DNA of 64,000 nucleotides. It comes from Zygnema circumcarinatum SAG 698-1b (taxonomy: Eukaryota > Plantae > Zygnematophyceae). Shown here piece after piece: positions 22,414 through 46,014 of the stretch. The notes under the pieces were generated by a model. It had not been told where the DNA came from, made no database searches, and was given only the letters and a program-made list of their open reading frames with translations. The translations under genes were made by a program, and so were the position numbers. Each line of letters begins with the position of its first letter. Position 1 is the stretch's first letter. The stretch is from the NCBI GenBank assembly GCA_037447605.1, contig CM074819.1:1448297-1512296 (forward strand), read 5' to 3'.

Positions 22414-24665
22414 ATGCATGCATGCATGGCTCGCGCCGCTCGACTCTGTACGAAACCGCCCGAACGTCGACCGCCGTCCGCGGCGACCTCCCTCGGTCGG
22501 CGTCGGTTAGTTCTCGCACTTGCGGAAGCGCCAAATCTGACCAACCGGTCGCCAGCTCGCGTGTTGTACAGCCGAGACCGTATGAGTCCAGGTGGCGGCA
22601 GCTCATTCGTGCTCATCCGCCAGCTCACGACAACGCCCGTAAGGCCCGTCACGGCAAAACAGCCACGCGCGGTGGCGCTGACGTGGAGCTGTCCACCAAT
22701 GGCGTGCCGGCACCGACATCGGCGGCGCTTACAAGAGGCGGCGCGGAGGGCAGGAGGAGGCAGCGAGCGAGCAAGCGGCCATGGCGGCAATGAGGGCGAT
22801 GAGCGCGAGGGCGGCGATGGGACTGGCTCTGACTCTGACCGTGGCCGTGGTCATGGCGGGCCTGCGCGGAATTGCGGCGACGGCGATGATCTCTGAAGGT
22901 GTCTGCGGCGCGGCCGCTCTGCAGCGCTGCGACTTCCGCCTTGGCAGCAGCGAGGAGGCCAGGTCAGCTGCCACCTCAGCCGTAGCGCCACTCAGAGTCC
23001 GCCACGTGGCATTTCAAATCAGGATTGCTTGAGAAGCAAGCGATAGTTTATAACAATGGACGGGTGTCCGTGCAGTTGGGGGGGAGGCTCTGACTCGGCG
23101 GCGGAGTGGAGCGTGGAGGACGCCGTGAGCGGCGGCGAAGCCTTTGTCGACAAGGACGCCGTAACTGCATTGCTCTGCAAGAAATCGGCGCTCACTGAAG
23201 TTTTCGGAGAGGTAAGGCGATGCTTCGAGCTCTGATCCCCACCGGCGGAAAATGCGATCGCAGTTTTGAGGGGGGGGAGCTCAAGCGGTGCCGACACTCA
23301 ATTGCGGGGATCAGAATGATAGGTTCATTTTCGCATTACGAGTTTGGAAGTTAAATGACAGTGAGAGTGCAGGCACTGTGCATAAATGAATTCGCCCAAA
23401 TGGCTACTCGAGCTTTTCCTTATTTCTGCTTTGTGCTATCTTCCTTGGAACAGTTGTTGACAGAATGGCTCTCCGAGAGCTGCTTGCTCGTCCCCCTTTC
23501 ATCGATCCAAGTTGCAACATCTGAAGGGACGAACAGCCTTCAATGGGGCGACACCAATCAGGAGGAGTACCCAGACGACCGTCGATGCATTGTTTTCGAT
23601 AAGGACACCTTTATAGAGGACGAATTTTGCAAACTTGAGTCACCACCACCTCCTCCCCTTGCATCCCCCCCTCCTCCTCCCCGTAGATCCCCATCCCCTC
23701 CTCCCCATAAATCCCCACCCCCTCCTCCCCATAGATCCCCATCCCCTCCTCCCCATAGATCCCNNNNNNNNNNCATCCCTCCTCCCCATAGCTCCCCATC
23801 CCCTCCTCCGCATAGATCCCCACCTCCTCCTCCGAAAAGATCCCCGTCACCTTCGCCTTGCCAAGACGTCTGTCCCTCCAATCCACAAGAGCTTTGCGAC
23901 TTTTTCTTCGCCGGCCATGAAAAGGACGTCCCCACATTCCATTTGGTTCACAATGTGAGCAGCGACGAGTCGAGGCCTCTCAGTCCCGGCCTCCGTACAG
24001 CGAAAGTCGGCGGAGAAGTCGCAGTGAAGGTGGAAGTCGACGAGTCGGGGAGAGGCGCGTTCAAGGGCTGCCCTCGTACGGACGAGTCTCCAGGGAACCA
24101 GTTTTATCTCAATGGGGAGGACGCCACTCTGAGGGCGCGCACTTATCAGAGCGATCGCGGCGTCGATTTCTTCCTCCATCGGTGCATTGTTCTCCGCGTT
24201 GAGGCGTTCTCCGTGGTGTACAACGGCAACGGGGCGTACAATGTGCCTCCTGATACAGAAGACATGTTTCCATCGTCACGCCGCTGTGTTGTCTTCAAAA
24301 CTGAGTACTAGAGCTGGCGGGGAGCCACTGTGGACTGCGCGATGAGAGTCTGAAGTGAAGCGACGGGATTGGCAGAATGATTTTCATAGACAGTTGGAAT
24401 TTTTTTTGCGGGGGGGGGTTGCGTGCAGTTTGGAAGCAAGTTTGGAAAGCGTGCTCTAGCAAGAGGGGTCGTAGATCACATTCTGAGATAGCAATGTTCG
24501 CCGCATGGAAACTCGCGATATGTAGTGTGCGATCACTGCAAGACGTTGTAATTCTTTCTCTATTGCACGAAATGCTCGTTACGAGTTACTTTCAGTTGAT
24601 GACGTGGCATTGATCATCGGATTCCTGGATGTGTATGCTTGCGTTCAAGTCTCGAGTCAGGGGAG
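22414..24665. repeat. Inverted segmental duplication, arm 1 (partner 42897-45437)
   Basis: The promoter (from the CATGCATGCATGG run), whole gene and about 350 nt of 3' flank (to ...CTCGAGTCAGGGGAG) align to the reverse complement of 42897-45437. Confidence 0.95.
22781..24311 (+). CDS. Secreted chimeric hydroxyproline-rich glycoprotein-like protein, copy 1: signal peptide, domain A, (SPSPPPHR)n rod, domain B
   Basis: Three phase-consistent exons: 22781 to about 22962 (hydrophobic MGLALTLTVAVVMAGLRGIAATA, AG|GTCAG donor), 23076-23212 (SWGGGSDSAAEW...VFGE|GTAAG) and about 23452-24311. The frame and splice sites are conserved in the inverted copy at 43254-45067. An N-gap lies inside the repeat. 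Confidence 0.85.
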
Positions 24666-25933
24666 TTGGGTGTTCAGAACAAGCCCCTGTTTCCCGCCAA
24701 CATCATCATCATCATCATCAACAACAATCATCATTGTTGTCATCATCATGAGGCTTCATTGCCGCCTTTGACGCATATGCTTCAGCTCCGCCAGTTACTA
24801 CTTTTGCCAACAGTTCATCCTCCCTCGACGGGGCTGCCCTTGCAACCTGCTCTAATGGGATAAGCTCAGAGGAGGGCGCGCCAGGTGGAGGGAGGCTCCG
24901 GAGCCAATGCCGCCACCTTCACCTTCATCCCATCGCCTAATGTCCTCGTGGTTTCTCTACTTCTCTAATTTCAGTTCACCACATCAAGTCTCAACAACTC
25001 ATTGTACTACAACTTTCATTGTTTCGATTCAAATCCAATGTTGCGTTCAAGGGCCGCGGAAAGCTCCCTTCCACGGCCAGACGGCCGTACAGCTTGGATT
25101 CCGGAGGTGGATCCAAGGTTCCACCAGCGTTTAACCATACGGACGAGGTTAACCATCGGCGAGGCCAACAAATCTGCCGGCTTGGCGGTGGTTCAACGTC
25201 GGTAGACCCAATGGGCTTCAGACACGTGTTGTACGAGATCAATTGTTTACGCCACGTGGCGCTTGGAAATCCGGTGTAGCTGCGAATCCGAGTGATGGAA
25301 TTGGCGAAGAGAGTGAGAGAGAGAGACGAGAGTGAGGGGGGAGAGAGGGAGAGGGAGAGGGAGAGGGAGAGGGAGAGGGAGAGGAGAGGAGGAGAGGAGA
25401 GGACGAGGGAGAGAGGGAGAGAGGGAGAGGGAGAAGAGGGAAAGTGAAAGGAGAGGGAGAAGCGGGAGAGAGTGGAAGAGGGCGAGAGTGAGGGAGAAGG
25501 AGTGAGGGAAAGAAGGAGAGGGAGAGGGCGTGGAGACAGGGAGGGAGAGGGAGGTCCGATCCGTAGCCCTAAAGCAGCGGCTGCAACCCTTAAAGGAGTC
25601 ATTCTGGATCCGCATGCGAGTCCCGCGCGGGCACGGGCGGTGGTGGGGGCAGCCGCCTCGCCTGCAGAACGAATTAGGGTTTCGGGTGAGCAGGAAATGA
25701 TGCAGGCAATGGTTCTCAGCTGATGGATCATGATCAGGATTAGGGTTAGGGTTGCGGAGATGATACGTAGATAGTCGGAACGTGATGTGATGCATGTAGG
25801 GGTGATGTGCGGCACAGGGTATGCTCCTTGAAGAGCAGAGGGCAATTCGATTCTAATGGTCGGGTTTTCATTCAAAATTTTGATCGTGATTTGCAAGGAT
25901 GTATGGGTAGTGTAAGGCCACCACCCACCATGC

Positions 25934-28900
25934 ATGGCGGATGCATGTAAGTTTATAGATCATGCGGTAGGGAGAGGATTTTGCACATAAAATCTTCACC
26001 TAATGGATGCTGTACGGATTTACGGTGCATTTGCTTCCATGTTAGGGTCTGGTCCTCCGTTAGTTCCAACCTCCGTTACGCCGTGCAGCGAACTACTGTC
26101 ACTGTGCTATTTGCGAGTTTTCATGGCTGGAGAAATTGATTAAAAGGCGGGCGTCTTGGAATGAAGGAACGCGAAATTTTGAAGGCTTAAAGAAACCATC
26201 TTAGACCTAGAGAATTCTTTTAGAAGACTGGAACTGTGCTCACCATAACGAAAAAAATAAGCTTTCTGATTAGCCTGTAGGGAGTCTCCCTTTGTCTTTT
26301 AGAACATTTGAATCCCTTCAATGTCGTCAACTCAAATCTTAATAAACCAAGAACCTCACAATACCTCAAGTTTGTGGGACCGGAAAATCCTTAAACCCTT
26401 AAAGCCCTTCAAAGCCTTAAACCCTTAAAGCCCTGCAAACGTTCCAAATGGTAAGGAGATTCAGAATCCTCATCAGCCCTACAAGCCTAATTGGCACTAA
26501 TTGGCCGCAAACTTCAAGCCCTCCAAAATCTTGATCTATACTTTCTTTGCTTTTTCGTTTAGCAGGAAGTGCAGTTTCTGAATCTCCCCCTCACAAGGCA
26601 CGGATCCAGTTTAACGGACTTGGGGGGAAACTGTATCGAGCATGGGAACCTTCCGTTGCGTTGGTGTTTTCCGTCACAATACTTGCAACTATAACTGCTG
26701 TTTCCATGTGGATACTGCTGCAAGGAAGGGCGGCGGATAACAGCAACTCCTTGTTGATCGCGAAAAAGAAGCCAAGCTCGTTGGGTGAGGGTCCCCAAAA
26801 CTTAAGAAGAAGAAAAGAGAAGCTCAGTGGACCATTAGTAGTAATCTCTAAGTTACTTACATATTGAAACAACCGAATCCCAAACTTTGCAGATTTGAGG
26901 AGAGAAAACTGTTGGGAGAAGCGAATGTGTCGAAGACTTGTACAGAAATCTCTAAAAAGATAAATAGTGGCAAGAGTCCAGCCTTGGAGGAAGTGGTGCA
27001 GGGAAATGAAGAAGTTCAGAAGGAGAATGTGGATGTAAAATATGGAGAGGCAGAGGGATGGGAGGGACAGTGAGGAAGAGGGAAAGGGAGAGGGACTAGA
27101 GAGAGGCAGGGATAGGGGGGAAGGAGGCGAGAGAGAGAGAGACGGAGAGGGGGGGAGGGGAGAGGGAGAGGGCAAGGGGAGGCGAGCGAGGGAGAGGGAG
27201 GGCCAGAGGGGAATAGCAGGGAAGGCAGAGAAAGTGGCGACGAGGGAGATGAAGCGGGTAGGAGGGAAAGGGAGGGAACGAGAGAGAGGGGAAGGAGTAA
27301 GGGTAGCAGAAGGAGGAAGGGGAGGAGGGAGAGACTACAGAAATTGAACAGGCTATGAATGAAGAAGGGAAGCTTTTATTAGAGAAAGGAAATAAAGAAT
27401 GGAATGGACCTTTTGTACGAAAAAACCTCTTAAAATATTCACCTTAATTTTGTAATGAGACCAAATTTATTCTCTGAAAACATTTCAAGTACGTACCAGT
27501 TTACAATATTTTACGCAGAATGTAAATTTTTTCTGAGATGACGATTTTTTTCATTGAATTGGGGCGTAGTTCCCATCAGATGAATTAAGGAGCTGCGATT
27601 TCTATTCGGGAAAATGGGTTCAAGATTTTCGCCGACCTCCGTACGATGGGCAAAAATGCAAAATTTTGGCTCCCCATTGGGCCTGCAGGAGAAGCAATCG
27701 ACCATTTTTTGACTATGAAAATTGGAGCTGGAAACCCAATGGATGTGAAATTCCACTACTTGATCGGGAGGACTTTTTTCAAAGGTTATGAAAATGTTTT
27801 TCACAGCTTATTTTAGACTTATTTTTGGATTTATTAGGGTTTGTTAGGGTTGTTAGCATCGTCTTTCTTTTTGCAAAGGATGTAAAACCTGAACAATGGA
27901 TGGATACATTTCGTTTCTATGCTCATTCGTAACGGTTTTCAGTTCGATCCTGTCTTGTCCTTTCTGCAGAATGAGGAACAGGAGTTTGGCTTTTATTGGA
28001 GACTCTTTAGGACAGCAACAGTTCCAGTCAATGATGTGTCTCCTTGTGGGAGATTCCGTTGAGGATTACGGAATGGTCGATGTTTCTCCGGAATACGGGC
28101 TTGTGAAAGCTCCGGAAGACGCGAGGCCCCCGGGCTACGCTTTCCGTTTTACGGAGTCCAACACAACGGTGCTGTTTTCGTGGTCCTCGTGTCTATGTGA
28201 ACTGGAACGGAAAACGGAAACGGTGGTGGCGATGCATGTGGACCAGCCGGATGTGTTTTTGAAGAGTCGGTGGGGGAAGTTTGATGTGATAGTGCTCAAC
28301 ACAGGGCATCACTGGACCAGGTGAGAGAGTGGGAGGGAGAGGAGGAAGAGAGGGCGGGGGAGGGAGAGAGGGAGGGAGGGAGGGAGGGAGAGGAACAGGT
28401 GAGGTAGTGGGGGAGGGGGAGGGAGAGGGACAAGGGCGGGAAGGGGAGAAAGAGGAACAGGTGAGGGAGGGGGAGAGAGAGGAGGAAGGGGAGGGAGGGA
28501 GGGAAGGGTAGGGGGTGGGAGGAGTGGGAAAAGGGTATGGAGCAGGGAGATAGCGAGGGATGGGAAGGGGTTGGAGGAGGGCGGGTGGGAGGGAAGGGAG
28601 GTGGAGGGAGGGAAACGGGTGGCGGAGGGTGGAGAGTGTGAAATGGGGAAGGAAAGGGAGAAAATGTGAAGAGGATGATGTGGAGAGGGGAGGCAGGAGA
28701 AGAGAAGAAGAAGGTGAAGAAGGTGCCGGGAGGGAGGCAGGCAGGCAGGGAGAAAGGGAGGGAGGGAGGGAGGGAGGAAGGTTTTTGCGGTTAAGTTTTT
28801 AACGTTTCAAGGGTAATAAGTCACTGTGTTTAAGCACATTCATCCTGCCCGTGATTCCTCCCTCCTTTCAAAAAGCGCACTCCTGCCTGAACCACCTCAC

Positions 28901-29247
28901 TGTATATCTCAAATGACCAAAAAACATTCCCCAATCTTAGTCATATCTGTGTGTATATGGCAGAGAAAAGATGAAAAAGAATGGATGGGAGTTCTATGAA
29001 AAAGGGGGCCCTTTTACTCGGCCCAATAAGAGAGCGTTGACCTTGTCCGAAGCAATTGATCGGAGTCTGAGTACTCTCACGGAGTGGATGGATGGGAGGC
29101 TGCGGGAGAGAGAGGAGAGGGAGAGGCCCTTGGTGTTCCTTAGGACTCTCTCAACGCGGCATTTTATGGAGGGAGAGTGGAACTCGGGAGGTCGTTGTGA
29201 TCACCTTCGGGTGAGTGGGAGTGGAGAAAACTCTCTCTCTCTTTCTT

Positions 29248-29311
<64 letters not shown>

Positions 29312-29687
29312 TCTCTGGGGCTCTTGTTCTCGCAGTCTTGCCACTCTGTCTCTTTGACTTCATTTCGGAGGGGAGATTCTGCGTTCCTTTGTGCAGAAAA
29401 TGCTGTCTCCGGAACAAGTCGCCTCCAGACAAGTGAGAGATGTGTCAGCGGAAACCGCCGCTAGCAACACACTCATTCACCTCATGAACATTACGTATCT
29501 GTCTCAGTTCCGTGCAGAAGCTCATCCCTCCACATGGAACTACCGCCTCCTTCCGGGAATTCAAGACTGCTTGCATTGGTGCCTCCCAGGCGTGCCTGAT
29601 ATTTGGAACGAGATGATCTATGCTCACATTTTGATGAGATACGAACGGGAAGGGAGGGACTCCGGCTCGCATGGGAATGGAAGGTAG
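25934..29687 (+). CDS. TBL: Trichome birefringence-like (TBL/PMR5, PC-esterase) polysaccharide O-acetyltransferase, closest in motifs to the TBL14/15/16 group
   Basis: Exons: MADA micro-exon (25934-25946, GTAAGT donor; the start is inferred); TM exon ALVFSVTILATITAVSMWILL; CDFYSGKWVQD...YDGQKC...WAC...WSWKPNGC; MRNRSLAFIGDSLGQQQFQSMMCLL (GDS motif)...VLNTGHHWTR; LVFLRTLSTRHFMEGEWNSGGRC; QDCLHWCLPGVPDIWNEM (DxxH motif). Confidence 0.93.
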
Positions 29688-30798
29688 AGGGGAAAAATAG
29701 ATCGGTGGTAGTGTGTGTATGGACCAACATAGAACATGGTGCTGTAGCTTGAATTTGTTGTAGCATGGGTTTCATTGTACAATGTTTGTGCGAGGTATCC
29801 TACAGGATATGGTTGAGAAGGTGGGTTTCGTTTTTGAAAGAAGTCTATCGTTGACTATAATTTCAGGATCAAAGGTGGGCTGTGGTTCTCACGAATAAGG
29901 AAGCAATAAAGAAGGAGACCGAGATGGCTCCATGGCATTCTTTCATTTCATTCCATTCCATTCCGTTCGGTTCCGTTCCAAAGGTCGGCGTGTTTCCCTT
30001 TTGCTCAATTTTGCTTTTGTTGTGTCGAGGGTGGGAGAAAATCTATAGAGAAAAGCGGTACTAGCTGTATGGCTGTGCGTGATGATGTATATGAGTGACC
30101 GGCGGACGCATGCAGAGAGGAGAGTACATCCAGCAAAGCACTCACAACCCAGAAACATTCACACAAAGACTTCATATGGGACTAACAGTATATCCCAATC
30201 GATATATCTCGATATGTTATTTAATGATATATGGCGATGCTTGGTCAGAGACTGCGCTACGATATATTCCCAAGATCGGTTCGCGGCGCGTCCACCTCTT
30301 GAGCGGACTGCAAGTCCTCCTCGTGGTTCCCCATGCTGCTTTTGTCCATGTACATTTGCTGGCGATCAATGCCACATCCCCTCCGCCTCCTCCTCACATT
30401 CAACTTTATTGCAGCGAACGAAGGGACTTCAACACACCGAAGCACAGCAGCAATTGTCAACCTCTTCTTTGGAATGAGGTGAAAAAATGAGCAGGAAGTG
30501 GCAAGGTTGGCCTGTTCACCCCCTCCACCTGAAACGAGTCCAAGCCACCCCAAAAATCGCCAAAATTCTCCATCGACTCTACTCAAAAAGAGTCTCCAAG
30601 AGGCTCGATAAAGGCGCTTAGGAGCTGCCTAAAGGCTGTCATATGCTCACCTGACGGCTACAAGACTCTCCTAGAATCTGCAGAAGCTGTGCTGTAGAAG
30701 TTTCCCAGAGGAGAGGAGAGAAGAGAGAGAGAGAGAGGGAGAGAGAGAGAGAGTTCTCGGAAGCTGCCCTGAAGCTGCATAGACCGACCTCCCGTCCG

Positions 30799-32541
30799 TC
30801 ACTTTGCATAGGATAACAAAAATATTCCCGAAAGCAGTGCGATTCCCGATACCCAATACAATCGCCGATACGACCCTTGAATTTCTCCGAACAGAAAAAT
30901 TCCCCAAACTCCGGCGACGAATAACCCGCATTGCATTGTTGGGTACGCCACACTATACCCCACTTTCTGCAGAGCGAGGATGGAGCAGATGTTGGAGAGA
31001 CTCCAAATGAAGCCCGCAAGGAGACCGAAGAGCAGAGTCTCCCTCAAATGAAGGTCCGGCATTTCGCGACGAAGTAAATTGGGTAAAAGGTTTACAATTG
31101 GGCCAAATAGGAGCACTCCGATTCCGAAGGAAGGTATGAACCCTAAACCCTGCGCCTCTTTGGGGGCAAAAGTTTCAGGGGCGAGCACAAGGCCGCCGAA
31201 AAGGCCGGTCAAAACGGCAGCGAGAATGCCTTTCTGGAAAGTGGGTTTGGAGGTTTTGGTTTCTGGCAACAAACCAGGAAAAAAAAATAGAAAAATTAGA
31301 ATTAGAATTAAAATTAGAATTAGATTGAAGCAAGTCAGAAGCTGCGGAAAGACATTCAGAGGAGTCGAACGGTGGGGAAAATGTAGGAGCTTGGACAGTA
31401 TAGTTTAAACATTAATACAGAGAAGCTTAAGATAAGCAATCATGGTATAATCCGAACAATTAATCAGAAGAAGAATAACAAAAAGCCAACAGAAACTAAT
31501 TTGGCATGACAATTTTCCAGGTTTTGTCAAAAATTTCAAAGAAGACCCATCGCCCCAATCCCTACGAACTGCAGTTCGATTTTTTTTTTTTTTTTCATTT
31601 CGTTTTTTAGGGCTTTCATTTGATGATTCAAAACTTCACTTGTCATCCCGATGCAAAAGTGGTTCAAAACCGCCGGTTATGACAACCGACATTTCATTTT
31701 GACACTCTTTCTGGAGATTAGATACAGTACCACAGTAATACATTACTTATAGAAATTAGCTGCCTGCATACTGTAACCTTGTAATTTACCAGTCGATTTT
31801 ATACGAAAGAAAGGCTGGTTTTGCATTCATTTCAGAAAATAAATCTGTAGGCGAAGCATTGATAAAGAGGAGGAAGATGGATGACTTTGAGAAATCATGA
31901 TAGTGGGAAGAGAGAGGAGGAGAGGGAGGGGGAGTGGTGGAGAGGAGAGAGTGACAGAGAGAGAAAGCGAGAGAGAGCGGGAGAGGGAGAGCGAGAGGCC
32001 CCTACTCCGACCTACCCGAAGCACCTATGCCATCCTCCACCGGCTCATACGCCCCTCCCACTTCCTCTCCCTCTCTCTCCTTCTCCCACACCTCCGCCTC
32101 TCTCTCCGCCGCCCTCTCCGCATACGCCATAGCGCATATGCTCGCTAGGAGCACCCCCAGTGCCCCTATTGAGACCCAGACCTCCCTCACGCGCTCTTGA
32201 AAGAAGTGCCCGAAAAGGAAGGATACGAGCACAGCCGTCCCGCTCCAAACGCCCGCAGCCGTCGATACGCCGAGCATCTGGACGGCTCTCATCGCCATCA
32301 GGGAGGAGAGGGCCAATAGGAGGCCGCCAGCGAGGCCCTGCCACGTCAGCAGGGGGGCGGGGGTGGGCAGGAGGAGGAGGATAGCGAGGGAGGAGACGGC
32401 GACGCCGAAGTTGAGGTAGAGGTTGAAGATGGGCGGGGCGATGCCTGTGGAAGTGACACGTGGCAGCTTGGAAGGGACGGCGAAGGTTCCATTGGCGACG
32501 GCGGAGAGGAGGGCAAAGAGCATGCCCGTGATGTTGAGCAT
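30799..32541 (-). CDS. TMEM144: TMEM144-like drug/metabolite-transporter superfamily membrane protein (sugar-transport type), 2 exons
   Basis: Exon 1 MLNITGMLFALLSAVANGTFAVPSK...GVSTAAGVWSGTAVLVSFLFG joins in phase 1 (TCG G|GTAGG...CCAG|AA) to exon 2 GILAAVLTGLFGGLVLAP...GLLAGFIWSLSNICSILALQKVGYSVAYPTMQCGLFVAGVWGIFLFGEI. About 10 hydrophobic segments in two halves. Confidence 0.8.
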
Positions 32542-32954
32542 TGTGAGAGGGAGGGAGAGCGAGGGAGGGAGGGAGGAGGGAGAAAGGATCCAGGGAGTGA
32601 GAGAGGGAGGGAGGGAGGGGAGCCAGGAAGTGGGAGAGGGAGGGAGAGGAGAGGGAGGGAGAAGGTGGGAGAGGGGGAGAGGGAGGGAGAGTGAGGCAGG
32701 CAGGGAGTGGGAGAGGGAGGGAGAAGGTGGGAGACGGGGAGAGGGAGGAAGAGAGGGAGGCAGCCAGGGAGTGGGAGAGGGAGGGAGAGGGCGGGAGGGA
32801 GGGAGGGAGGGAGGGACGGAGGGAGCGGGAGGGAGGGAGGGAGGGAGGGAGGGAGGGAGCGGGAGGGCGAGCGGGTGGCGGCGGCTGCCACATGGAACTC
32901 CCACCGACGGGTCAGTGATGAGCCACGACGGACGGGCGCAAAAAGCTCAACCAA

Positions 32955-33215
32955 TCTTCATGTGCCACGTATTATTTTTGGATGACGTGGTGCGCTGGGA
33001 TTGGAAGAGAGCTCTATTTAATGACTTTGGCTGCATGGAATAATAGGCTTGCGCCCTACGTGCGACACGTGTCCTTGTGACCGCCACGTGGCAGAGTGAA
33101 GGCAATTCATAGCCTTATAGCGCTTGTGGTGCTTTTGTCACGTGGCCACCTCTCATTGGCTACGTGCTGGGGGAGAGCCTATCGGCACAGCCCTAACAAA
33201 AACGATGACGTCATG
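32955..33215 (-). promoter_or_regulatory. Cluster of ACGT-core (G-box/ABRE/as-1-like) motifs upstream of the TMEM144-like gene
   Basis: CCACGTA, TGACGTGG, CTACGTG, GACACGTGTC, GCCACGTGGC (33083), TCACGTGGC, CTACGTG and TGACGTCA all fall within about 260 nt. Confidence 0.5.
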
Positions 33216-33352
33216 CATAGGTCCTCTCCGCAAGCGGTCGCAAACCGCTTCGGAAAAATTGACGAAATTTTTCCTCGGCGAATGAAGGGGAGGAATTGGC
33301 CCTCGCTCGATAAAAGTAAAATCTTCGAAAAGTTTGGCGGAACGGGAACCAA

Positions 33353-33512
33353 AACTAGCCACATGGAACATGAGGCTGTCTTCATGAATGCGGGCATGGA
33401 AGGAAGAAACGTAGTGTTGAACATATGACGAACTAGCTACATGGAACATGGGGCTGTCTTCATGAATGGGGGCATGGAAGGAAGAAACTTAGTGTTGATC
33501 AAACATATGACG
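33353..33512. repeat. Tandem duplication of a 78-bp unit
   Basis: AACTAGCCACATGGAACATGAGGCTGTC...AACATATGACG (33353-33430) is repeated at 33431-33512 with a few substitutions and a 4-nt insertion. Confidence 0.9.
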
Positions 33513-35718: not shown

Positions 35719-38700
35719 TCAAAAGGAGGGGGAATCTGAAGCCGAACCGGAGCTCGATGACTGCCCCTGATGGAAACGCACCATGGCCTCTTGCAGCAGC
35801 TGTAGGTCTCGTGCAAGCTTCACGTTTTGGCGCATAAGCCCCTCCTTCTCTTCTCGGAGTTTGAGCAGTTGTTGCCGCAGAACCTGCATGCCATGATCAC
35901 AGTTAAAAATGAGACAGAGCACAACCAAAGTACAAAGATTTGCAGCAAGACTTCCTATTCGCAAACATGGAAATCATGCTAGAGAGTGAGAGAAGCAGAG
36001 GTAGAGAGAGAGAGAGGGGGCGGGGGTGAGGAAGACGGGAAGGGAGAGCGAGAGAGAGAGAGAGGGAAAGCAAGAGAGACGGTCACTTTCCAGCGAGGAG
36101 CTTTATACACACCCGCTCATCTGTCAAACTGCGGATTCCTCTCGAACGTTTCTGCTGCTCTTTTTCGATTTCCTCACATTGCACTTCCACTAACGCCAAA
36201 GTGGATCTCGTTCCATCCAGATCCCGAGTCAATCGCTTATAGTCCTCTGGAAAAAACATATCAAGGGCAATCTCAATATAACATATGCAGGAAACATAAC
36301 TTAAGAAGCCTCACCAAACCAAACAAGAGTACCCTCAGATTCACTCTAAGTAAAGCCGGTCGTGGATAATGCATGATAACTGAAGATGTAACACTACACA
36401 TTCCAAGCGTAACTCATAAGTAAAGCTAAATTTAGCGAGCACAGTAAATAAAGACGCAAAGACGAATAACATTGGACTTTAGACTACGCAGCGATTAACA
36501 GGTGACCTCAAAATAGAGGAGGTAGGACAGCTAAAGCTTCAGAAACCATGCAGAAAGAAGGAGGACGACATAATCTCCGTTGCACACTAAAAGTCACAAG
36601 TCATTCCATTTCGCAAAAGAGAACAGATCAGTTGACTTTTTTAACAACGTGCATACTCCAAAATTCACTTCATACATACACTTCGGTTTAACTAATGAAG
36701 TGCACAAAAACAGAGGGCAAACGGTTTGGTTGCTCTTTCCGAGATTGATGCAATCAAAATTGGGAGAGACTAATCAAGCCGACCGAGAAAGTGTCAGTTT
36801 GACGACTCCACCGTCAAAAACTCACAACACTCTTGTCACAGTCACATACACTGGAAAACTATCAAGGTCATTATCTTAAGGACATCTTGGACCAACACAA
36901 ACGCATAGACTTTGTCTACTCACATTCTCTACATTACAACCAACTTCCAAACCAAAACGAAGGCACGAAATGGGGAAACAGCAACAGTGGCAACGAAAAC
37001 AATAACAACAAAAGAAGGGCAGAATATCCTTACGTTGCATGGATGCCATAGTTTGAATGCTCGTTACTTGACGGAGATCAACATTCACACTATGCTGCCG
37101 ACGGAGAGATTCCCCTCCTTGCGACCACCCTTGTGGTGGTAACTTCTGGTTTGAACCGAGAGGCTCCTCTCTCCTCTGCTTGCCAACTGTGCTCCTGCCC
37201 AATCTCTCTCTATGCATCTTCCCTTGTCCATGTACTCCATTACCTCGCCCATCAGAAGCAGCATAGTATTGCCCCTTCTCCGAACCCTTTGGCGAGTCCG
37301 AACTCCCACTTGCACTTGCTGCTGCTCCTCCAAGCTGCAACTTCATGGAGGCAACTTCTAACGCGAGAGTATTATATCGCAGCGCCAAGTCTTCAATGCT
37401 TTCCTGAGTCTGTGCAGCTACTGCTGCCAGACTGATACTCTGTGCAGCTTTTCTGTTTACACTGGAAGGCATCAGCACAGACCTCGGAGAGTCGCTTCCG
37501 GAAGCAGGTCGATGAGAGTCGGTAGAAGAAAGGGGAGAGTCGCTAGAGTACCCATGCACAACGAGAGCAGTGCTTGTAACAGAAGTTGCTGTGTCCGCCA
37601 CTGCTGTCTCGGTTGCAGGTCTTTTGCCCGAGTAAAGACCATCTTTGTACTCTCCTGAGGTTCGTCCAAATATCTCCTCCATACTGATCTTAGACCAGCT
37701 GCTCCTTCCAGGATTTGGCAGCGTGCTTGGACTCACTCTCTTCACAGCCGCTACTCCACCTACCGACACGCCTTGAAGCAGTGGTCGCAGCAGAAGCTCT
37801 GCCAGCTTCATACCCTGCAAAGTTTCCGGGCCTTCAGGACAGGAGACCTGTCCAATATCCACCAACCAAACAAGCCTGTCGATATCTGCAGCCACAAGCC
37901 TTCTCACACTTTCTGGAATTCCTGCAGGCGTCAGAATCACCCTTGCAGTTTCATCCGGCTCCAGCCCATCCTCCAAATCCTGATCACCTGTGCTGCAAAT
38001 GAGGTCCTGTCTGACTAAAGTCAGAACTCTTGCAACTATCTCGCTTGCTCGCTGAAGATGAGAAATTTCCCTTGGACAGACGCTCGATATAGACCTTGCA
38101 AGGACCCGCTTCAGCTGAGCAACCGCCTCCGTTACTCCTTGAGATGCAAGAGTTCCGAGCGGACTGCTCAGAGGCACAAAGTCAAGTACATGTTCAAGAG
38201 CCGCATCTTGAAATCCTCTATCAAGCTCCCAGTCGCAGACTCCCTGCGTTACAAGGCGAGAACAGAGAAAAATCTCCAGAAACAGCTGCTGGAACAGGGA
38301 GTAGAATTGCAACATCCTTCCAGGAGCTTTCAGGGCAATCAATCCATGGCTTCTCCTTGCCCCTCCTTCTCCTCCACTTACTCCTGCTGCCAATTTTTCA
38401 GGCATTTGGCATCCCAGTCGATCCAGAACCTCATGCGGAACACCGATCAACCATTCTTCAGGAGATTCCAGCCTCCGAATGAGCTGTGAGAGGGGCAGGT
38501 GGCGCAGACTGCCGAAGAGCTGTCTGTATGCAGACATGGCTTCCGAGAGCTGCCGCTTCGGAGCCGACTCCTGCTCCCCTCTTCCACTTCCAGGGGCCTT
38601 CTGGCTGTGCAGCATAGCGGTCCTGAAGGGCATTCTCTCTCTCCCCAGCCCTTCACTTCTGCCATGAGACTGCTGCCGCTGAACACCTGCAAGCCCTCGC

Positions 38701-38975
38701 CCTAGAGACGGCTCACTGTGGCGCCGATGTTTGCGCAGAACAGGCAAGCTGTCAGGGAATATATCCGCTTCCATGGCTGCACCTTCACGATCTTCATACT
38801 CCTCCGCAGGAGGGAGCCCTTCCAAGCTCTGATGCCGCGACTCCGCTCTCTCTCCCACCTTTCCTCCCCCTGTTCCCCTGCTCACAACATTTGCATCTCC
38901 TGTAACTGCTGCCCTCCCATCCTTCCGCTGATGCTCCATCACTGACACCCGCGACATCACATTGGAGACATCCAT
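35719..38975 (-). CDS. Hypothetical protein of about 690 aa with a helical core and C-terminal coiled coils
   Basis: A non-repetitive open exon of about 1.9 kb runs from ATG 38975 (MDVSNV...) to a CAA|GTAAC donor near 37068. A phase-0 terminal exon encodes VLRQQLLKLREEKEGLMRQNVKLARDLQLLQEAM...PSF* (about 35884-35719). A perfect G-box lies upstream at 39245. Confidence 0.75.
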
Positions 38976-40258
38976 GGCCCGTTCCCCTCTCCTCCTCCTC
39001 CGTCTCCTAGACAACTCCCGCTATCTCCCACTATCCTTCTACCCGCGTTTCTCACTCTCTCTACGATACCTCTCAGCTAACCCTCTCCCTCTCCCTCTCC
39101 CTCTCCCTCTCCCTCTCCCTCTCTCTCCCTCTCTCAGCCCGGCGCCTGCACGGCGCGCGGGCGCGCAGAAAGCGCAGTTGACTGGACGGCAGCCATGACT
39201 GCCTGCGAGCTCGTCCTGCAGGACCCTCCCTCCCTGCACGCCTAGCCACGTGGCGCGCGTCCAGAGGCCGCAGCTGACAATCTTCGACTCCGGCAAATCA
39301 GCAAGCTCCTTTACACGTGCGATCGCGAAGGAGCGCATGGCTGGGGGCACGTGGCGGTACGCGAGAGGGCGAGACGCGCCAGGCGGGCAGCAGGCGAGGC
39401 GAGGCGCCCTGTCAGGAGCGGCGCCAATGACAGGAATTGAGCGAAGGCGAATATTGAGGGATCGAACTAAATGGGATATAACAGGGTTAAATTGGCGCAA
39501 GCCTCAAAGTTCAATTTAGGTTTTGGCGTGGCGGCTGTCAGAGGCGACCGGCCGGATTTTGGGGCGTCTTGACGGCGGGGTCGGTCGGTGACTGTCGGCG
39601 GGCTTGCCACTTTTCAGGGGCAGACGACCAATCACAGCCTGCCATGTCAGCAAATATACTAACGTGGCGAGCTTTTATTGGACCAGTTCTTGGAGTGGCA
39701 GATTTCCAGTTTGCCAGCCAGTGGCGCCGGCGAATGGTCCCCCGGCGGGCGGGCGGGCGGGCGGCGGACGGTTGGGTCAAGTCCCCAGGATCAAGAACTC
39801 GGGATCCACCATTTGAGGGTGAATTTCGATGGCATATGCCAATCAGGATGTGGCACGCCTGCAAAGTTTACCACGTGTAATGTTCTCATTCGATGCACGT
39901 CAGGTATGCCATCTGGGAATTTCCAGCCCTGGAACTCGTGCATGATGTAATGATGGATTAACTTTTTCGAAAGGTTGATCCAGGCCGTCGCAACTTGCAA
40001 AAACCATAAACATGACAGGCCGACCTCAACTAGATTTAGCTGTTTTTCAGAGGACCGAAAAACCGGAAACCGAGTGCTTGGTTTGCAACCGGCGAAGAGC
40101 CAGAAAGCGACGTTAGGAAAATTTACCCACAACAAAAAAAAAAAAAATATGCCGCCGGTGGTTGAACTACGAAAGTCTATTTTTTCACCGATGTGCTTTT
40201 TCAACGATTTAAAATAAAAACCCGACGGAATGTTTTTGTGACCGCGGCGGGCAGGCTA

Positions 40259-40817
40259 CCGTAAAACCGAGCAGGTTGAGAAATTGTTAAACGAATTTAC
40301 TTCATTTCTCAGTTCTCAATGTTATTGAATAGCGTTGGACTTTGAACACTCGAGGTTGAAACTTTTTCGATTTAAGAAAGCGAAAAGTTTAAGAAAAAGG
40401 TTCAAAGTCTCAATGTGTTCGGTCGCAAGTGTGGATTCCAATTTTTGCCACGTCGAGCGATCCGGTCAACCCGAGCTCCAGTTTTGCAGTAACAACTCTT
40501 CAGGCGGGCCAATCAACAATTTCTATATGGACCTCCGGGTCTAAGCGCTTTACAATCCACTACAATCTCATTGTTGATCGGTGGACCCAAGGAAAACTCC
40601 AATTGAACACGAACGATTATGACTTGTTCAATGTTCAATTGGTTCTCAACAAAAATCGTATTGAGAAAAAAAAGAATTCATTTCTCATTTCTCAAAACGA
40701 ATCGCCATAACAAAAAAAGGGCTTTTGTATGAGAAACTGGTTTTAATTTTTTTTTCTTTTTTTAGAAGCCAAAATCTTCAAGATAAAAAAGATTTCTCAA
40801 CCTGTTCGGTTTTACGG
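40259..40817. mobile_element. Non-autonomous Tc1/mariner-superfamily MITE (CCGT termini, Tc2/pogo-like)
   Basis: TIRs CCGTAAAACCGAGCAGGTTGAGAAAT and ATTTCTCAACCTGTTCGGTTTTACGG (26 bp, 1 mismatch), flanked by TA at 40257-58 and 40818-19. AT-rich non-coding interior. Confidence 0.85.
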
Positions 40818-42896
40818 TAGCGGCCTTGCGCGGTCAACTGCACCCGCCCGGCCTCAAATGGTCCCCGTTCCCGGGCAAGTACGTCAGAAATTTCCTCTCC
40901 TGACCGGACGGCGCTCAATCGTACGACAACCGAGGGGACGTACATTGTACTGTACCGAATTCCCGACCTGGTGGTGCCGGCTTTTGTCCCGACTGGCGAC
41001 TGACCTTGCCGATTACGGTTCCGTACGGTACTTCCACCCGACTTCTTATGCCGACTGACGACGACGGGGACAGTTCCGTCCGTCGTTTTCCGTCGACGCG
41101 GACCGTACGGTTTTGACCGTACAACTTTACTTTGTCTTTTGAACACGTGTTGCTACGTCAATCGGCGCCAATGCGCGAGATCTGCGGAATTTTGTCGGGT
41201 AGCGGTCCTGCTGAATCTGACGACCAATCAGAGTCGCACGGAAAGAATTGACCATTGACCGGCCGCCGGAGACAGCCCGTAGACCGGGTGGGTAGTTCTG
41301 CTTTCCGTACTTTTTGTGCCGGGCGGAATACGGATTCCGGAATTCTGTGGAATACTTCTCGTACAGAAGCGGCGTACGGTCGAAGAAGGATAATGGCGGG
41401 GTCGCCGGAGTGAGAATCGAGATCAAACGGACGGTCAGGATCGTGATGCCACGTGGAAGGTGGATCAGAGTCCTGCGCAGCGGAAGCGAATGGAGGGCTT
41501 AGTGGATCCTTGGGTCCACTGGGAGTGCGGGATCTCCGGCCTCGATGTATTTCCATAAAAAGATTGATCAGAGTTTCTTTGTTTTCTGCTGTTGTCGAGT
41601 TCGCAGTTCCGTTAGCCTCTTGCTTTGACTGCATGGAATCATAGATGACTCACTGTCGGTGCATGCTCTCACTCTCCAAGGCATGAATTTCACTGCATTT
41701 CTCTACAACCTCACACATTCATACAAAGGATACTCGAACCATCATCATCATCATCATCATCATGATTCCATCAAGCACTGCATCTTTCATCCATAATCAA
41801 ACATTGCAAGTCATGATCAACATAAGTTCTACACACAACTCCACTTCTCAATAGGTGCTATGGTCAAGGGGTCCTATAGCCAAGGGGCTATACTCAGGGG
41901 GCTTTGAAGAAACCCCCTTCAGGCTGAGCTGCTCCCTCCACTATCGATCACTCTAATCTATCACCATCTCCTTCACTATCTCCTCTAATTCGATGAGCGC
42001 AGTCGCAGCGCCTCCACTCCACTCCACACGCAAAATACTCGCCTGCTCTACACCTCAACTTCCAAGCAGCTGAGAATGCAGGGTTTGCAGCGACTTCCTA
42101 AGACAAAAACAATTCCGTTTCTACTATACAACGTTGCATCAGTACCTTCACAAAACTGTTCACTACAGCCCAAGAATAGCCGCCATCGCCTGCATGTCAG
42201 AGGCCGCAAACGCCGTGACGCTTGTCGCCTTGCACCGTTCCCTGCAACGGCGCGCCTTGCAGAACACTCGATCGCCATTTCACCGCCTGACTGCCAGCCC
42301 ATACCTTCACACTGTCCCCCCTCCGCCACACCCTCGCGCGGACTGTCCACACATAGCGGCAACGGCAACGGTTCTGTCAGTGCTCTGTCGCCCTGCTACA
42401 GTGCGTCGGAGTGCGGGAGCCCTCCTCTCCTCCTCCCGCGATCCTCGCTGCTCTTTATCGACAGCGCATTTCCGTCGCCCTTCAGCGGCGCCCCACTCCC
42501 CGCCCGGACGCTCCCTCGGCGTGAAGCCGCGGGCGGTTGTTGCTGGCGGTGTCGGTGGCCTTCCACCGCTAGCTCCCTCCCTCCCTCCCTCCCTCCCTCC
42601 CTCCCTCCCTCCGCGCGATGTGCGATTAACCGCGATGACACATCCTTTGCATCCTTGAAGTTAAATGATTTTGGTTGTTCAATCATTGTGATTAAACTTG
42701 CCCATTAGTCAACTTGGACTCTGCTGTTGCTGAAGTGGCAGTATTGGCTCAGAGGAAAGGCTTTTTGTTTAGGTCTTTAGCTTTATGCTTGTCCATTGGG
42801 CGCACATCAAAGAAATAACCCGTGTGCCCATTTAATAGTAAGCGGAAAATGCAGGAAAGGAGGACTTCAAGTTGGGGGCTTGTTATCATCTGCCAC

Positions 42897-45437
42897 CTCC
42901 CCTGACTCGAGACTTGAACGCAAGCATACACATACAGGAATCCGATGATCAATCCCACGTTATCAACTGAAAGTTACTCGTGATGAGCATTTCGTGCAAA
43001 AGGGAACGAATTACAACGTCTTGCAATGATCGCACACTACATATCGCGAGTTTCCATGCGGCGAACATTGCTATCTCAGAATGCGATCTACGATCCCTCT
43101 TGCTAGAGCACGCTTTCCAAACTTGCTTCCAAACTGCACACAACCCCCTCTGCCCCCAAAAAAGTTCCAAATCTCTAAGAAAATCATTCTGCCAATCCCG
43201 TCGCTTCCCTTCAGACTCTCATCGCGCAGTCCACACACGGCTCCCCGCCAGCTCTAGTACTCAGTTTTGAACACAACGCAGCGGCGAGACCATGGAAACA
43301 CGCCGTCCGTGTCGGGAGGCACATTGTACGGCCCGTTGCCGTTGTAGGCCACAGAGAACGCCTCCACGCGGAGAACAATGCAGCGACGGAGGAAGAAATC
43401 GACGCCGCGATCGCTCTGATAAGTGCGCGCCCTCAGAGTGGCGTCCTCCCCATTGAGATAAAACTGGTTCCCTGGAGACTCGTCCGTACGAGGGCAGCCC
43501 TTGAACGCGCCTCTCCCCGACTCGTCGACTTCCACCTTCACTGCGACTTCTCCGCCGACTTTCGCTGTACGGAGGCCGGGACTGAGAGGCTTCGACTCGC
43601 CGCTGCTCGCATTGTGAACCAAATGGAATGTGGGGACGTCCTTTTCATGGCCGGCGAAGAAAAAGTCGCAAAGCTCTTGTGGATTGGAGGGACAGACGTC
43701 TTGGCAAGGCGAAGGTGATGGGGATCTTTTCGGAGGAGGAGGTGGGGATCTATGCGGAGGAGGGGATGGGGATCTATGGGGAGGAGGGGATGGGGAGCTA
43801 TGGGGAGGAGGGGATGGGGATCTATGGGGAGGAGGGGATGGGGATCTATGGGGAGGAGGGGATGGGGATCTATGGGGAGGAGGGGATGGGGATCTATGGG
43901 GAGGAGGGGATGGGGATCTATGGGGAGGAGGGGATGGGGATCTATGGGGAGGAGGGGATGGGGATCTATGGGGAGGAGGGGATGGGGATCTATGGGGAGG
44001 AGGGGATGGGGATCTATGGGGAGGAGGGGATGGGGATCTATGGGGAGGAGGGGATCTATGGGGAGGAGGGGATGGGGATCTATGGGGAGGAGGGGATGGG
44101 GATCTATGGGGAGGAGGGGATGGGGATCTATGGGGAGGAGGGGGTGGGGATCTACGGGGAGGAGGAGGGGGGGATGCAAGGGGAGGAGGTGATGGTGACT
44201 CAATTTTGCAAAATTCGTCCTCTATAAAGGTTTCCTTATCGAAAACAATGCATCGACGGTCGTCTGGGTACTCCTCCTGATTGGTGTCGCCCCAGTGAAG
44301 GCTGTTCGTCCCTTCAGATGTTGCAACTTGGATCGATGAAAGGGGGACGAGCAAGCAGCTCTCGGAGAGCCATTCTGTTAACAGCTGTTCCACGGAAGAT
44401 ACACAAAGCAGAAATAAGGAAAAGCTCGAGTAGCCATTTGGGCGAATTCATTAAGGCACAGCGCTTGCACTCTCACTGTCTTTTTAACTTCCAAAATTGT
44501 ACTTCGAAAAAAGAACCTATCAAAATCATTCTGACCCCCGCAATGGAGTGTCGGCACCGCTTCAGCCCCCCCCCCCCTCAAAACGCTGCGATCGCATTTC
44601 CGCCGGTGGGGATCAGAGCTCGAAGCATCGCCTTACCTCTCCGAAAACTTCAGTGAGCGCCGATTTCTTGCAGAGCAATGCAGTGACGGCGTCCTTGTCG
44701 ACAAAGGCTTCGCCGCCGCTCACGGCGTCCTCCACGCTCCACTCCGCCGCCGAGTCAGAGCCTCCCCCCCAACTGCACGGACACCCGTCCATTGTTACAC
44801 CCCATCGCTTGCTTCTCAATATCTAATACATATAACTGCCACGTGGCGTAATATGAGTGGCTCGGCGGCTGAGGTGGCAGCTGACCTGGCCTCTTCGCTG
44901 TTGCCGAGGCGGAAGTCGCAGCGCTGCAGAGCGGCCGCGCCGCAGACACCTTCAGAGATCATCGCCGTCGCCGAAATTCCACTTAGGCCCGCCATGGCCG
45001 CGGCCACGGTCAGAGTCAGAGCCAGTCCCATCGCCGCCCTCGCGCTCATCGCCCTCATTGCCGCCATGGCCGCTTGCTCGCTCGCTGCCTCCTTCTGCCT
45101 TCCGCGCCGCCTCTTGTAAGCGCCGCCGATGTCGGTGCCGGCACGCCATTGGTGGACAGCACCACGTCAGCGCCGCCGAGCTAGGCTGTTTTGTCGCGAC
45201 GCGCCTAACCGGGAGTTGTCCTGAGCTGGCGGACGCCCACGAATCACGAGTCGTCACGTGGCTCCTTACGGTCATGGTTCGTACGGCATGCGAGCTGGCG
45301 ACCGGTCGGTCAGAGTTGGCGCCGCCGCACTTGCGAGAGCCAACCGACGCCGACCGGGGGGTCGCCGCGGACGGCGGTCGAACTTCGGTCGCTTCCGTAC
45401 AGTTCTTGAGCGGCGCGAACCATGCCTGCATGCATGG
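42897..45437. repeat. Inverted segmental duplication, arm 2 (partner 22414-24665)
   Basis: The reverse complement aligns to arm 1 across promoter, gene and 3' flank. Confidence 0.95.
43254..45067 (-). CDS. Secreted chimeric hydroxyproline-rich glycoprotein-like protein, copy 2 (complete repeat rod)
   Basis: Same three-exon structure as copy 1. About 18 units of a 24-bp repeat (about 43730-44200) encode SPSPPPHR. Intact frame ending RRCVVFKTEY*. Confidence 0.88.
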
Positions 45438-46014
45438 GTCATGGCTGGACCGACGCATTGAAATATTTGAAATTTCAAATTCATTTTTATTTTATTTCAC
45501 ATGTGTATCACCCAGCGAGAGTGGCAAAACTTCAACGGGAGCTGAAATTTGAATTTGGTTTTGTTTTTGGAATTTGGGAACATTAACGTGTTCAAACTCC
45601 ACATAAGCTACAGTATATAAAATTCCGAATTTTAAATGCTATATGATCAACTAATGCAATTATTTCATATTAAAATTCGAGAAAAAAGTTACACCCATCT
45701 TAGGGCATTCCAAAACTAGAATCCAAATGTATTTGCTCGAAATTTTAACTCGAAACTTTAACCCTTGATCTCTTGAAAATTTAAGCCCCAATTCCACCAG
45801 GTTCCACTCAACCACATCCACAAACCCCATCAACATCTGGATCCACTTCCTCCTTTCCATTCCACCTTCCACTCCTTCCCAAACAAAAAACATCGTCAGA
45901 GCCACTTTCCCACTCAGATCCACTTCTTAACCCTTAATCCAACATCTGGGTCCTCGAGATCCACCACTCTACGTCCACCCTTGAACCAGATCAAGAGTGG
46001 ATCCGCGTTACCCC

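Follow-up and report, generated by a model that had tools for sequence, protein, structure and literature searches.

Among the algae nearest to land plants, wall proteins are little known, and a 2023 review found little detail on the location or function of extensins in charophyte walls and placed the wall proteome among the open questions (PMC10762512). A pair of inverted gene copies in Zygnema circumcarinatum SAG 698-1b raises the question of what a protein with two related globular ends, joined by a proline-rich rod, might do there. Our study examined 64 000 nucleotides of contig CM074819.1 (assembly GCA_037447605.1, forward-strand positions 1 448 297 to 1 512 296), a stretch referred to here as the window, in which a first-pass annotation made from the letters alone had picked out the pair. 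The account that we favour, and consider probable, is that the locus encodes a probably secreted chimeric extensin-like hydroxyproline-rich glycoprotein (HRGP), present as two recent gene copies, which would act as a two-ended cross-linker of the wall. Its parts differ in strength. The anatomy of the gene and of its domain family, as described below, is held with high confidence and the assignment to the secreted HRGPs is likely, whereas the role as a cross-linker built from binding modules, which draws on architecture, is put forward tentatively, at somewhat less than an even chance.

Gene structure, transcription and protein anatomy

The reverse-strand copy (copy 2) was modelled as three exons that total 1449 nt and hold an open frame of 482 aa; both copies have a stop in the same frame 33 codons ahead of the ATG. 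Expression was examined in public sequencing runs, eight of which, from one organism, were found, and contigs from four of these (X1 to X4) were mapped on positions 44190-45250. Runs X2, X3 and X4 gave one contig each, identical to copy 2 and with both introns removed (word depths 187, 40 and 93, respectively), and of the two joints X1 showed that of 252 nt. At both skips the plus strand has CT..AC, so that the introns of copy 2, a minus-strand gene, have GT..AG borders. Because contigs from three runs match exactly and skip both introns, copy 2 is transcribed and both of its predicted introns are spliced, so that the expression which the first-pass annotation had left to be checked was found for this copy. 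A separate observation is that the contigs of X2 (2955 nt) and X4 (3423 nt) extend more than 2 kb past 45250, upstream of the copy 2 ATG, to about 47400; the 5' leader is very long, or else these contigs have been merged with a transcript that adjoins or overlaps copy 2.

The copy 2 protein runs from a signal-like start through domain A (about residues 37-168, spanning both introns) and the rod (residues 169-328) to domain B (residues 333-482), which forms its C-terminal end. This is the layout that had been proposed at first pass, and the copy 2 model bears it out, with a putative signal peptide: residues 1 to about 35 show an Arg-bearing start, an Ala/Leu/Val core and an Ala-x-Ala motif ahead of residue 36, as judged by eye and from hydropathy. 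The 160 residues of the rod comprise 83 Pro, 38 Ser, 19 Arg and 17 His, with one each of Leu, Ala and Lys and no Tyr, in agreement with its earlier description as His/Arg-rich and lacking the Tyr cross-linking motifs of land-plant extensins. It contains 14 exact SPSPPPHR units and 20 SPPP motifs, and is encoded by a tandem array at 43713-44195 with a period of 24, 20.4 copies and 93 % matches. No hydrophobic C-terminal tail was seen in the copy 2 protein, and since domain B ends the protein without one, the predicted product bears no sign of a glycosylphosphatidylinositol anchor.

The proposal that domains A and B are ancient repeats was also upheld. In Smith-Waterman comparisons of A with B, the observed score was reached by 9 of 2000 shuffles with BLOSUM62 and by 4 of 2000 with BLOSUM45, a weak significance, and the matches of A to the wider family, given below, are the stronger evidence. 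Five Cys are collinear in the alignment, and there is an extra Cys in domain A (C165) and another in domain B (C333). Domain A was matched by a profile of 31 B-type domains at 42.2 bits (E 5.8e-15, one target), over its C..L..CDF start and, most strongly, over its last third (C.L.P..S.Q ... GD.N..YPDDRRCIVF). The first part of copy 2 exon 3, which encodes this third, was also matched by the family proteins P0021, P0023 and P0003 using tblastn. Used as a query against a set of 50 sequences, domain A retrieved relatives of domain B, P0021 among them at E 1.9e-10, and it resembles some other family members more than it resembles domain B. In the tree it lies on a long branch away from B, beside domains linked to GDSL enzymes, with weak support. 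As to whether A and B are sister copies, the tree gives no firm placement of the long-branched domain A. Taken together, the matches of domain A to the relatives and profile of B and its position away from B in the tree suggest that the two are old paralogous copies of one domain, rather than the outcome of a recent internal duplication.

The domain family

Domain B was searched exhaustively with phmmer against 1.84 billion protein cluster representatives. At E 1e-3 or better this returned 45 proteins, nine of them below 1e-10, the best being 4e-24 at 36 % identity and spanning residues 2-156. One candidate member, P0036 (700 aa), consists of bacterial Big_3_5 Ig-like repeats and was discarded as a phmmer false positive. 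Every match with a named source came from a streptophyte alga (Mesotaenium endlicherianum, Chlorokybus atmophyticus, Closterium strains and Netrium digitus), and the remainder were transcript or environmental contigs without a name. A profile search added further Closterium proteins, all labelled ‘hypothetical’ or ‘unnamed’. No land-plant member appeared in the exhaustive phmmer search, whose reach, with a single sequence as query, is limited. A word-indexed protein search with domain B, in which exon 3 set the length, returned nothing, as relatives share few 5-residue words or miss the length window; a profile search led by exon 3 was swamped by proline-rich words and gave three matches, all already known.

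An alignment of 31 family domain sequences (A1) revealed the motifs CP..P...CDF[YF]F.G.....PTF, QFY, C[VI].L and NLNPGD.N..FPE.RRCVVFKT. Columns P13, C20, R149 and C150 are invariant and C12 is nearly so; the counterparts of the conserved Cys in domain A are C42, C50 and C151. In the Zygnema protein, domain B matches family members over its whole length and domain A matches the family profile most strongly over its last third, with a collinear C..CDF start; the Cys of CDF, the Cys of RRC and the near-invariant Cys of CP are present in both. No Pfam family was matched by exon 3, domain B or the end of domain A (hmmscan, E up to 10), a Pfam scan of the 31 family members found none that they share, and a sequence profile search of the PDB gave nothing below E 0.5. 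No publications were found on the gene identifiers of the members or on the AlphaFold DB accessions given below.

The domain was observed in a variety of architectures. It stands alone after a signal-like start in, for example, P0005, P0006 and P0011, and many members, including ones from Closterium and Netrium, are small lone proteins of 150-220 aa that are probably secreted. It occurs as a tandem pair in P0001, and on both sides of a Pro-rich linker in P0002/P0047 and P0010, which are shorter dumbbells. Furthermore, a Pro-rich linker joins it to the N-terminal side of a GDSL lipase/esterase in P0023, a Trinity transcript assembly, and in P0041, and to the C-terminal side of a TAXi_N/TAXi_C aspartic protease in P0028 (Mesotaenium) and P0038 (Closterium), which are gene models from two genera. 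The domain also adjoins a thioredoxin in P0003 (Mesotaenium) and P0034 (Chlorokybus), from different algal classes; these pairings may reflect a genuine redox-linked fusion, or adjacent genes that were merged in the models. From these sequences, the domain appears to be a portable extracellular module of about 140-150 aa, an unnamed Cys-containing predicted beta-sandwich whose family is known so far only from streptophyte algae.

The first-pass description of an undescribed family therefore stands, there being no Pfam family and no solved-structure relative by sequence or by fold. Its suggestion of a similar domain in red algae fared less well, as the named sequence matches are all streptophyte; what is left of it is a lead at the level of the fold, in matches some of which are presumably from red algae. 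The suggestion of horizontal acquisition was not borne out, since the presence of spliceosomal introns and a range from an early branch (Chlorokybus) to late ones (Zygnematophyceae) fit vertical descent with loss.

Predicted fold

Domain B was modelled with AlphaFold2 using alignment A1, which gave an all-beta structure of about nine strands (mean pLDDT 84.4, pTM 0.83) and a confident prediction of a beta-sandwich. This alignment-based model was used instead of that from the single sequence, which had a pLDDT of 36 and was unusable. Against the PDB, Foldseek found nothing below E 1e-3, the top match being cadherin EC1 (E 0.014, template-modelling (TM) score 0.35), and a wide VIA-align search of 48 161 chains found nothing at Z 5 or more. 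Its leading match, a SusE-like polysaccharide-binding protein followed by cadherins, had a Z of 4.8, which lies within background by VIA-align's own notes. The Swiss-Prot AlphaFold models yielded weak cadherin matches only (best TM 0.35), a shape search of the ESM Atlas gave TM 0.45 or less, and ESM Atlas searches with domain B and P0005 gave no credible match (scores 0.49 and 0.71).

The only sizeable fold matches came from the AlphaFold DB clusters, as five uncharacterized proteins (A0A835YRB6, A0A2V3IQ34, R7Q9E1, A0A7S1XGZ4 and D7FPM5) with E values of 4e-5 to 9e-3, probabilities of 0.99-1.0, TM by query of 0.48-0.58 and nearly full coverage. They differ from domain B in sequence, at 14-17 % identity, and were missed by sequence search. 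Judging from unconfirmed accession ranges, we take R7Q9E1 to be from Chondrus crispus, A0A2V3IQ34 from Gracilariopsis chorda and D7FPM5 from Ectocarpus, presumably two red algae and one brown alga; this is a lead, not a result.

Duplication of the gene

The two gene copies lie in the arms of an inverted 2-kb repeat made up of five blocks (I1-I5) that are 93-98 % complementary, and identity drops to about 40 % past roughly 400 nt on each side. Between the copies are 19 kb of unique sequence that bears other genes. The comparison points to a recent inverted duplication of about 2 kb. The first-pass annotation had spoken of two intact genes in inverted orientation: the repeat arms confirm the inverted pair and copy 2 is open, and copy 1, which contains an assembly gap, may or may not be intact.

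All assembled parts of copy 1 are open, and a six-frame scan with the family profile matched both domains in its exon 3 (E 4.4e-10 and 2.3e-43). The gap falls within the rod array, with 5.0 units to its left and 2.9 to its right compared to 20.4 units of 24 nt in copy 2, and most likely hides collapsed repeat units. Read with the ten N, the frame continues into domain B, although the gap length of 10 N is an estimate and the frame across it thus carries little weight. Compared with the repeat unit and copy 2, which have CATCCCCTCC, the first unit to the right of the gap, CATCCCTCC, has one C fewer; its position is at the end of a contig, and errors are frequent at such ends. The phase and continuity of copy 1 are ambiguous because the gap length is estimated and the right-hand unit is one C short.

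Copies 1 and 2 were compared using the ratio of non-synonymous to synonymous substitution rates (dN/dS). This was 0.39 over the first 176 codons (7 synonymous and 9 non-synonymous changes) and 0.26 over the last 160 codons (11 synonymous and 10 non-synonymous changes), counts that are small and make the ratios no more than suggestive. The introns of the two copies are 81 % and 89 % identical, compared to 96-98 % for the coding repeat blocks. As dN/dS is 0.26-0.39 and the introns have diverged more than the exons, both copies look constrained, which suggests a working copy 1.

It is very unlikely, in our assessment, that the second copy is a misplaced allele or haplotig of a single locus, or that copy 1 is a pseudogene broken in the rod. 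Such an explanation could draw on the gap inside the copy 1 rod, on the unit one base short to its right and on the mapped contigs, every one of which is exactly copy 2 and none of which came from copy 1. However, the absence of copy 1 contigs among X1 to X4 is uninformative, as minor variants are lost from Logan contigs and the first exon of copy 1, about 93 % alike, possibly falls below the 95 % threshold. Moreover, the copies differ by 2-7 % overall and by 11-19 % in their introns, their exons are kept better than their introns, and they lie in opposite orientation, with the 19 kb of unique gene-bearing sequence separating them and with flanks that are unrelated within about 400 nt.

Proposed role and alternatives

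In the proposed mechanism, the signal peptide would send the protein out of the cell. Ser-Pro3 tracts of the green lineage are hydroxylated and arabinosylated and take an extended polyproline-II form. If the Zygnema rod is modified in the same way, it would take this form too and reach a length of up to about 50 nm (160 residues at about 0.31 nm per residue), and its basic His and Arg may also bind acidic polymers, for instance pectin, through ionic contacts. Each head domain would bind or anchor a component of the wall or matrix in the manner of carbohydrate-binding modules. This likening is based upon the small beta-sandwich being found at either end of secreted hydrolases, as well as alone and in pairs. 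If the domain is such a binding module, then the two-headed protein would act as a bivalent cross-linker or spacer of wall or mucilage.

Several observations weigh against this account. Binding, location and secretion are all read from sequence and architecture, and the N-terminus looks like a signal peptide as judged by eye and hydropathy only. The resemblance of the fold to sugar-binding or Ig-like modules is weak, the best Z of 4.8 being at noise level, and because the fold matches lie below that level the analogy with carbohydrate binding is one of architecture. In domain B the NLNPGD.N loop, conserved elsewhere in the family, has degenerated, so the two heads may differ in action. The thioredoxin fusions do not fit the pattern of wall enzymes, and they may be merged gene models. 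Finally, the reading phase across the gap of copy 1 is ambiguous, and that copy may not be intact.

Other roles can be envisaged for the same dumbbell. Its heads might pair with one another, or with further copies of the domain, by protein contacts or disulfide exchange, and so build a head-to-tail network from a self-assembling matrix block that leaves polysaccharide aside. The layout is that of the pherophorins, the heads differ and are not sister copies, which would suit contact of A with B, and C165 and C333 are extra Cys. We regard this as unlikely, as the domain also occurs singly on enzymes or alone, which is better explained by anchoring to a common matrix component. The domain could instead be a ligand or pheromone-like unit that the rod displays at the cell surface. 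The C-terminal domain of pherophorins is linked to the Volvox sex inducer and Closterium has glycoprotein pheromones (PR-IP and PR-IP Inducer), so the pherophorin-like architecture and the many small, lone, probably secreted members of 150-220 aa in conjugating algae (Closterium and Netrium) would fit a signal or recognition protein. Nonetheless, no match bears a pheromone name, the family is present in Chlorokybus too and fusion to esterases and proteases would be unexpected for a pheromone, which together make this role improbable. A part in defence, with a lectin- or inhibitor-like domain binding the surfaces or enzymes of microbes or parasites and the rod anchoring it in the wall, is likewise given a slim chance. 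By its Pfam names, the TAXi-type aspartic-protease fold of one partner includes plant inhibitors of microbial xylanases, copy number is expanded in the window and the paralogues have diverged fast, as indicated by long branches in the tree; yet dN/dS between the copies is below 1, with no sign of an arms race, and no similarity to a known lectin or inhibitor emerged from the Pfam, PDB and Swiss-Prot model searches.

The two-ended wall cross-linker is thus the role that we favour for this protein. A wider proposal, to which we give well under an even chance, is that the domain is a new wall-polymer-binding family of streptophyte algae, distantly related in structure to proteins of red and brown algae and lost towards land plants, that targets esterases, proteases and extensin-like rods to one matrix polymer. 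Under this proposal, the two-headed protein of streptophytes and the pherophorins of Volvocales would be counterparts that arose by convergence.

Features of the window and neighbouring sequence

The coordinates of the two copies are collected in Table 1.

Table 1. Features of the inverted gene pair (positions are those of the window)
Feature	Position	Strand	Basis
Left arm of inverted segmental duplication, contains copy 1	22636..24687	+	Inverted repeat pairs I1-I5
Copy 1, whole three-exon gene	22781-24311	+	Motif mapping onto copy 2 model
Copy 1 exon 1: ATG, signal-like peptide, start of domain A (C..CDF motif)	22781..22962	+	Motifs mapped onto copy 2 model
Copy 1 exon 2: divergent middle of domain A	23076..23211	+	GT..AG borders visible
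Copy 1 exon 3: end of domain A, rod from 23640, domain B 23859-24308, stop codon	23454..24311	+	Six-frame profile scan and open reading frame
Assembly gap (10 N) within copy 1 rod array	23764..23773		24-nt units on both flanks
Right arm of inverted duplication, contains copy 2	42875..45212	-	Inverted repeat pairs
Copy 2, whole gene including stop	43254-45067	-	Gene model
Copy 2 exon 1: ATG at 45067, signal-like peptide (about aa 1-35), start of domain A	44886..45067	-	Model; X1-X4 contigs, zero differences
Copy 2 intron 1, 113 nt, GT..AG	44773..44885	-	Exact 113-nt skip in X2, X3 and X4 contigs
Copy 2 exon 2: middle of domain A	44637..44772	-	Model and contigs
Copy 2 intron 2, 252 nt, GT..AG	44385..44636	-	Exact 252-nt skip in X1-X4 contigs
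Copy 2 exon 3, entire	43254-44384	-	Gene model
Copy 2 exon 3, first part: conserved C-terminal third of domain A (C.L.P..S.Q ... GD.N..YPDDRRCIVF)	44199..44384	-	Profile positions 102-146, 38.2 bits
Copy 2 rod: about 20 SPSPPPHR-type units	43707..44198	-	Tandem array and composition
Copy 2 domain B, full unnamed domain (predicted beta-sandwich)	43257..43706	-	45 relatives, AlphaFold2 model
Copy 2 stop codon	43254-43256	-	Gene model

Neither further family genes nor GDSL-esterase genes were found in the window by tblastn and a six-frame profile scan. A weak profile match at 10809-10895 (-), of 23 aa and E 0.014, was rejected on reading the sequence as a chance Cys pattern. Between the copies, at 27896-29357 (+), is a gene with pieces of a PC-Esterase (Pmr5/Cas1p, trichome-birefringence-like; E 7.5e-24 and 1e-08). 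PC-Esterase is a plant family of wall-polysaccharide O-acetyltransferases, and a wall-related gene therefore lies beside the pair. An exon of a TMEM144 or sugar-transporter-like membrane protein is seen at 30802-32904 (-; E 5.7e-12); the upstream open reading frame at 32005-32904, which opens on an extended low-complexity run of Ser, Pro and Leu, matches no Pfam family. A 712-aa open frame at 36876-39014 (-) matches no Pfam family at E 1e-3. Adjoining copy 2, a Ser/Pro-rich frame of SPPSPPSPS type (45997-46620, +) is broken by another N-gap and may be a further proline-rich wall-protein gene or low-complexity sequence only. GT, GA and CT microsatellites are abundant (8469-9732 and, for example, 25000-25900, 26600-27200 and 32000-33000); on both strands they give rise to spurious frames of great length that encode (GV)n, (GS)n, (SL)n and (PL)n, and lists of open reading frames from this region need care.

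Implications and comparison with known systems

Our study supplies a defined, expressed gene, a confident structural model and a 30-plus-member alignment for an unnamed, probably extracellular domain that in streptophyte algae is joined to proline rods, to GDSL esterases and to aspartic proteases. Should the domain bind a wall polymer, it would represent a new targeting module and a handle on the organization of the matrix before land plants, and chlorophytes (with pherophorins) and streptophytes would have reached the same dumbbell design separately.

The protein can be set beside the extensins using the scheme of Liu et al. 2016 (PMC4769139), which takes at least two SPPP motifs as its extensin criterion and includes a class ‘other chimeric EXT’ (extensin). 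The rod has 20 SPPP and lacks the Tyr of classical extensins. With at least two SPPP, an extra unnamed domain and no Tyr-X-Tyr, the predicted sequence fits ‘other chimeric EXT’ and not a classical extensin. It shares with the chimeric extensins of that scheme a signal-like N-terminus, many Ser-Pro3 (20) and an extra non-HRGP domain. It differs from them in having no Tyr/YXY cross-linking motifs, a His/Arg-rich rod and an unnamed non-HRGP domain that is present twice, and it matches none of the LRX, PERK and formin classes of land-plant chimeric extensins.

The heads are comparable to linker-tethered carbohydrate-binding modules, in that they are small predicted beta-sandwiches which occur at either terminus of secreted hydrolases, by way of a Pro-rich linker, and also alone or in tandem. 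They differ from them in having no sequence match or convincing fold match to any named module (no Pfam match, and a SusE-like Z of 4.8 that is noise), the likeness here being one of architecture. With cadherin and Ig-like domains they have in common a general Greek-key beta-sandwich, and cadherins head the weak PDB, Swiss-Prot and Atlas matches. However, the TM of 0.3-0.45, Z below 5 (≤4.7), E above 0.01 (best 0.014) and the lack of a Pfam Cadherin match indicate that this is a common strand arrangement and no evidence of kinship.

The closest parallel in overall design is provided by the pherophorins, HRGPs of the extracellular matrix of Volvox and Chlamydomonas, which in Volvox are proposed to polymerize into a network. 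The first-pass annotation had seen no pherophorin motifs, and Pfam scans agreed: the pherophorin domain, which we take to be PF12499, was matched neither by domains A and B (hmmscan, E up to 10) nor by the 31 family members. The fold matches among Swiss-Prot AlphaFold models, headed by a cadherin at TM 0.35, list no reviewed pherophorin, in a library whose pherophorin content is unverified. The likeness consists of related globular ends, a Ser/Pro (hydroxyproline) rod, probable secretion, membership of a multigene family and a probable role in the matrix, the dumbbell layout of pherophorins being that of Hallmann 2006 as cited in PMC10762512. Unlike pherophorins, the relatives of this protein are from streptophyte algae rather than chlorophytes, and its end domain also serves as an appendage of enzymes. 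Because the pherophorin domain model is unmatched and the relatives are streptophytes, the protein is not a pherophorin, and the resemblance is one of layout, which is probably convergent. The dumbbell HRGP design is thus the known part of this system, and the unnamed head domain is the new part.

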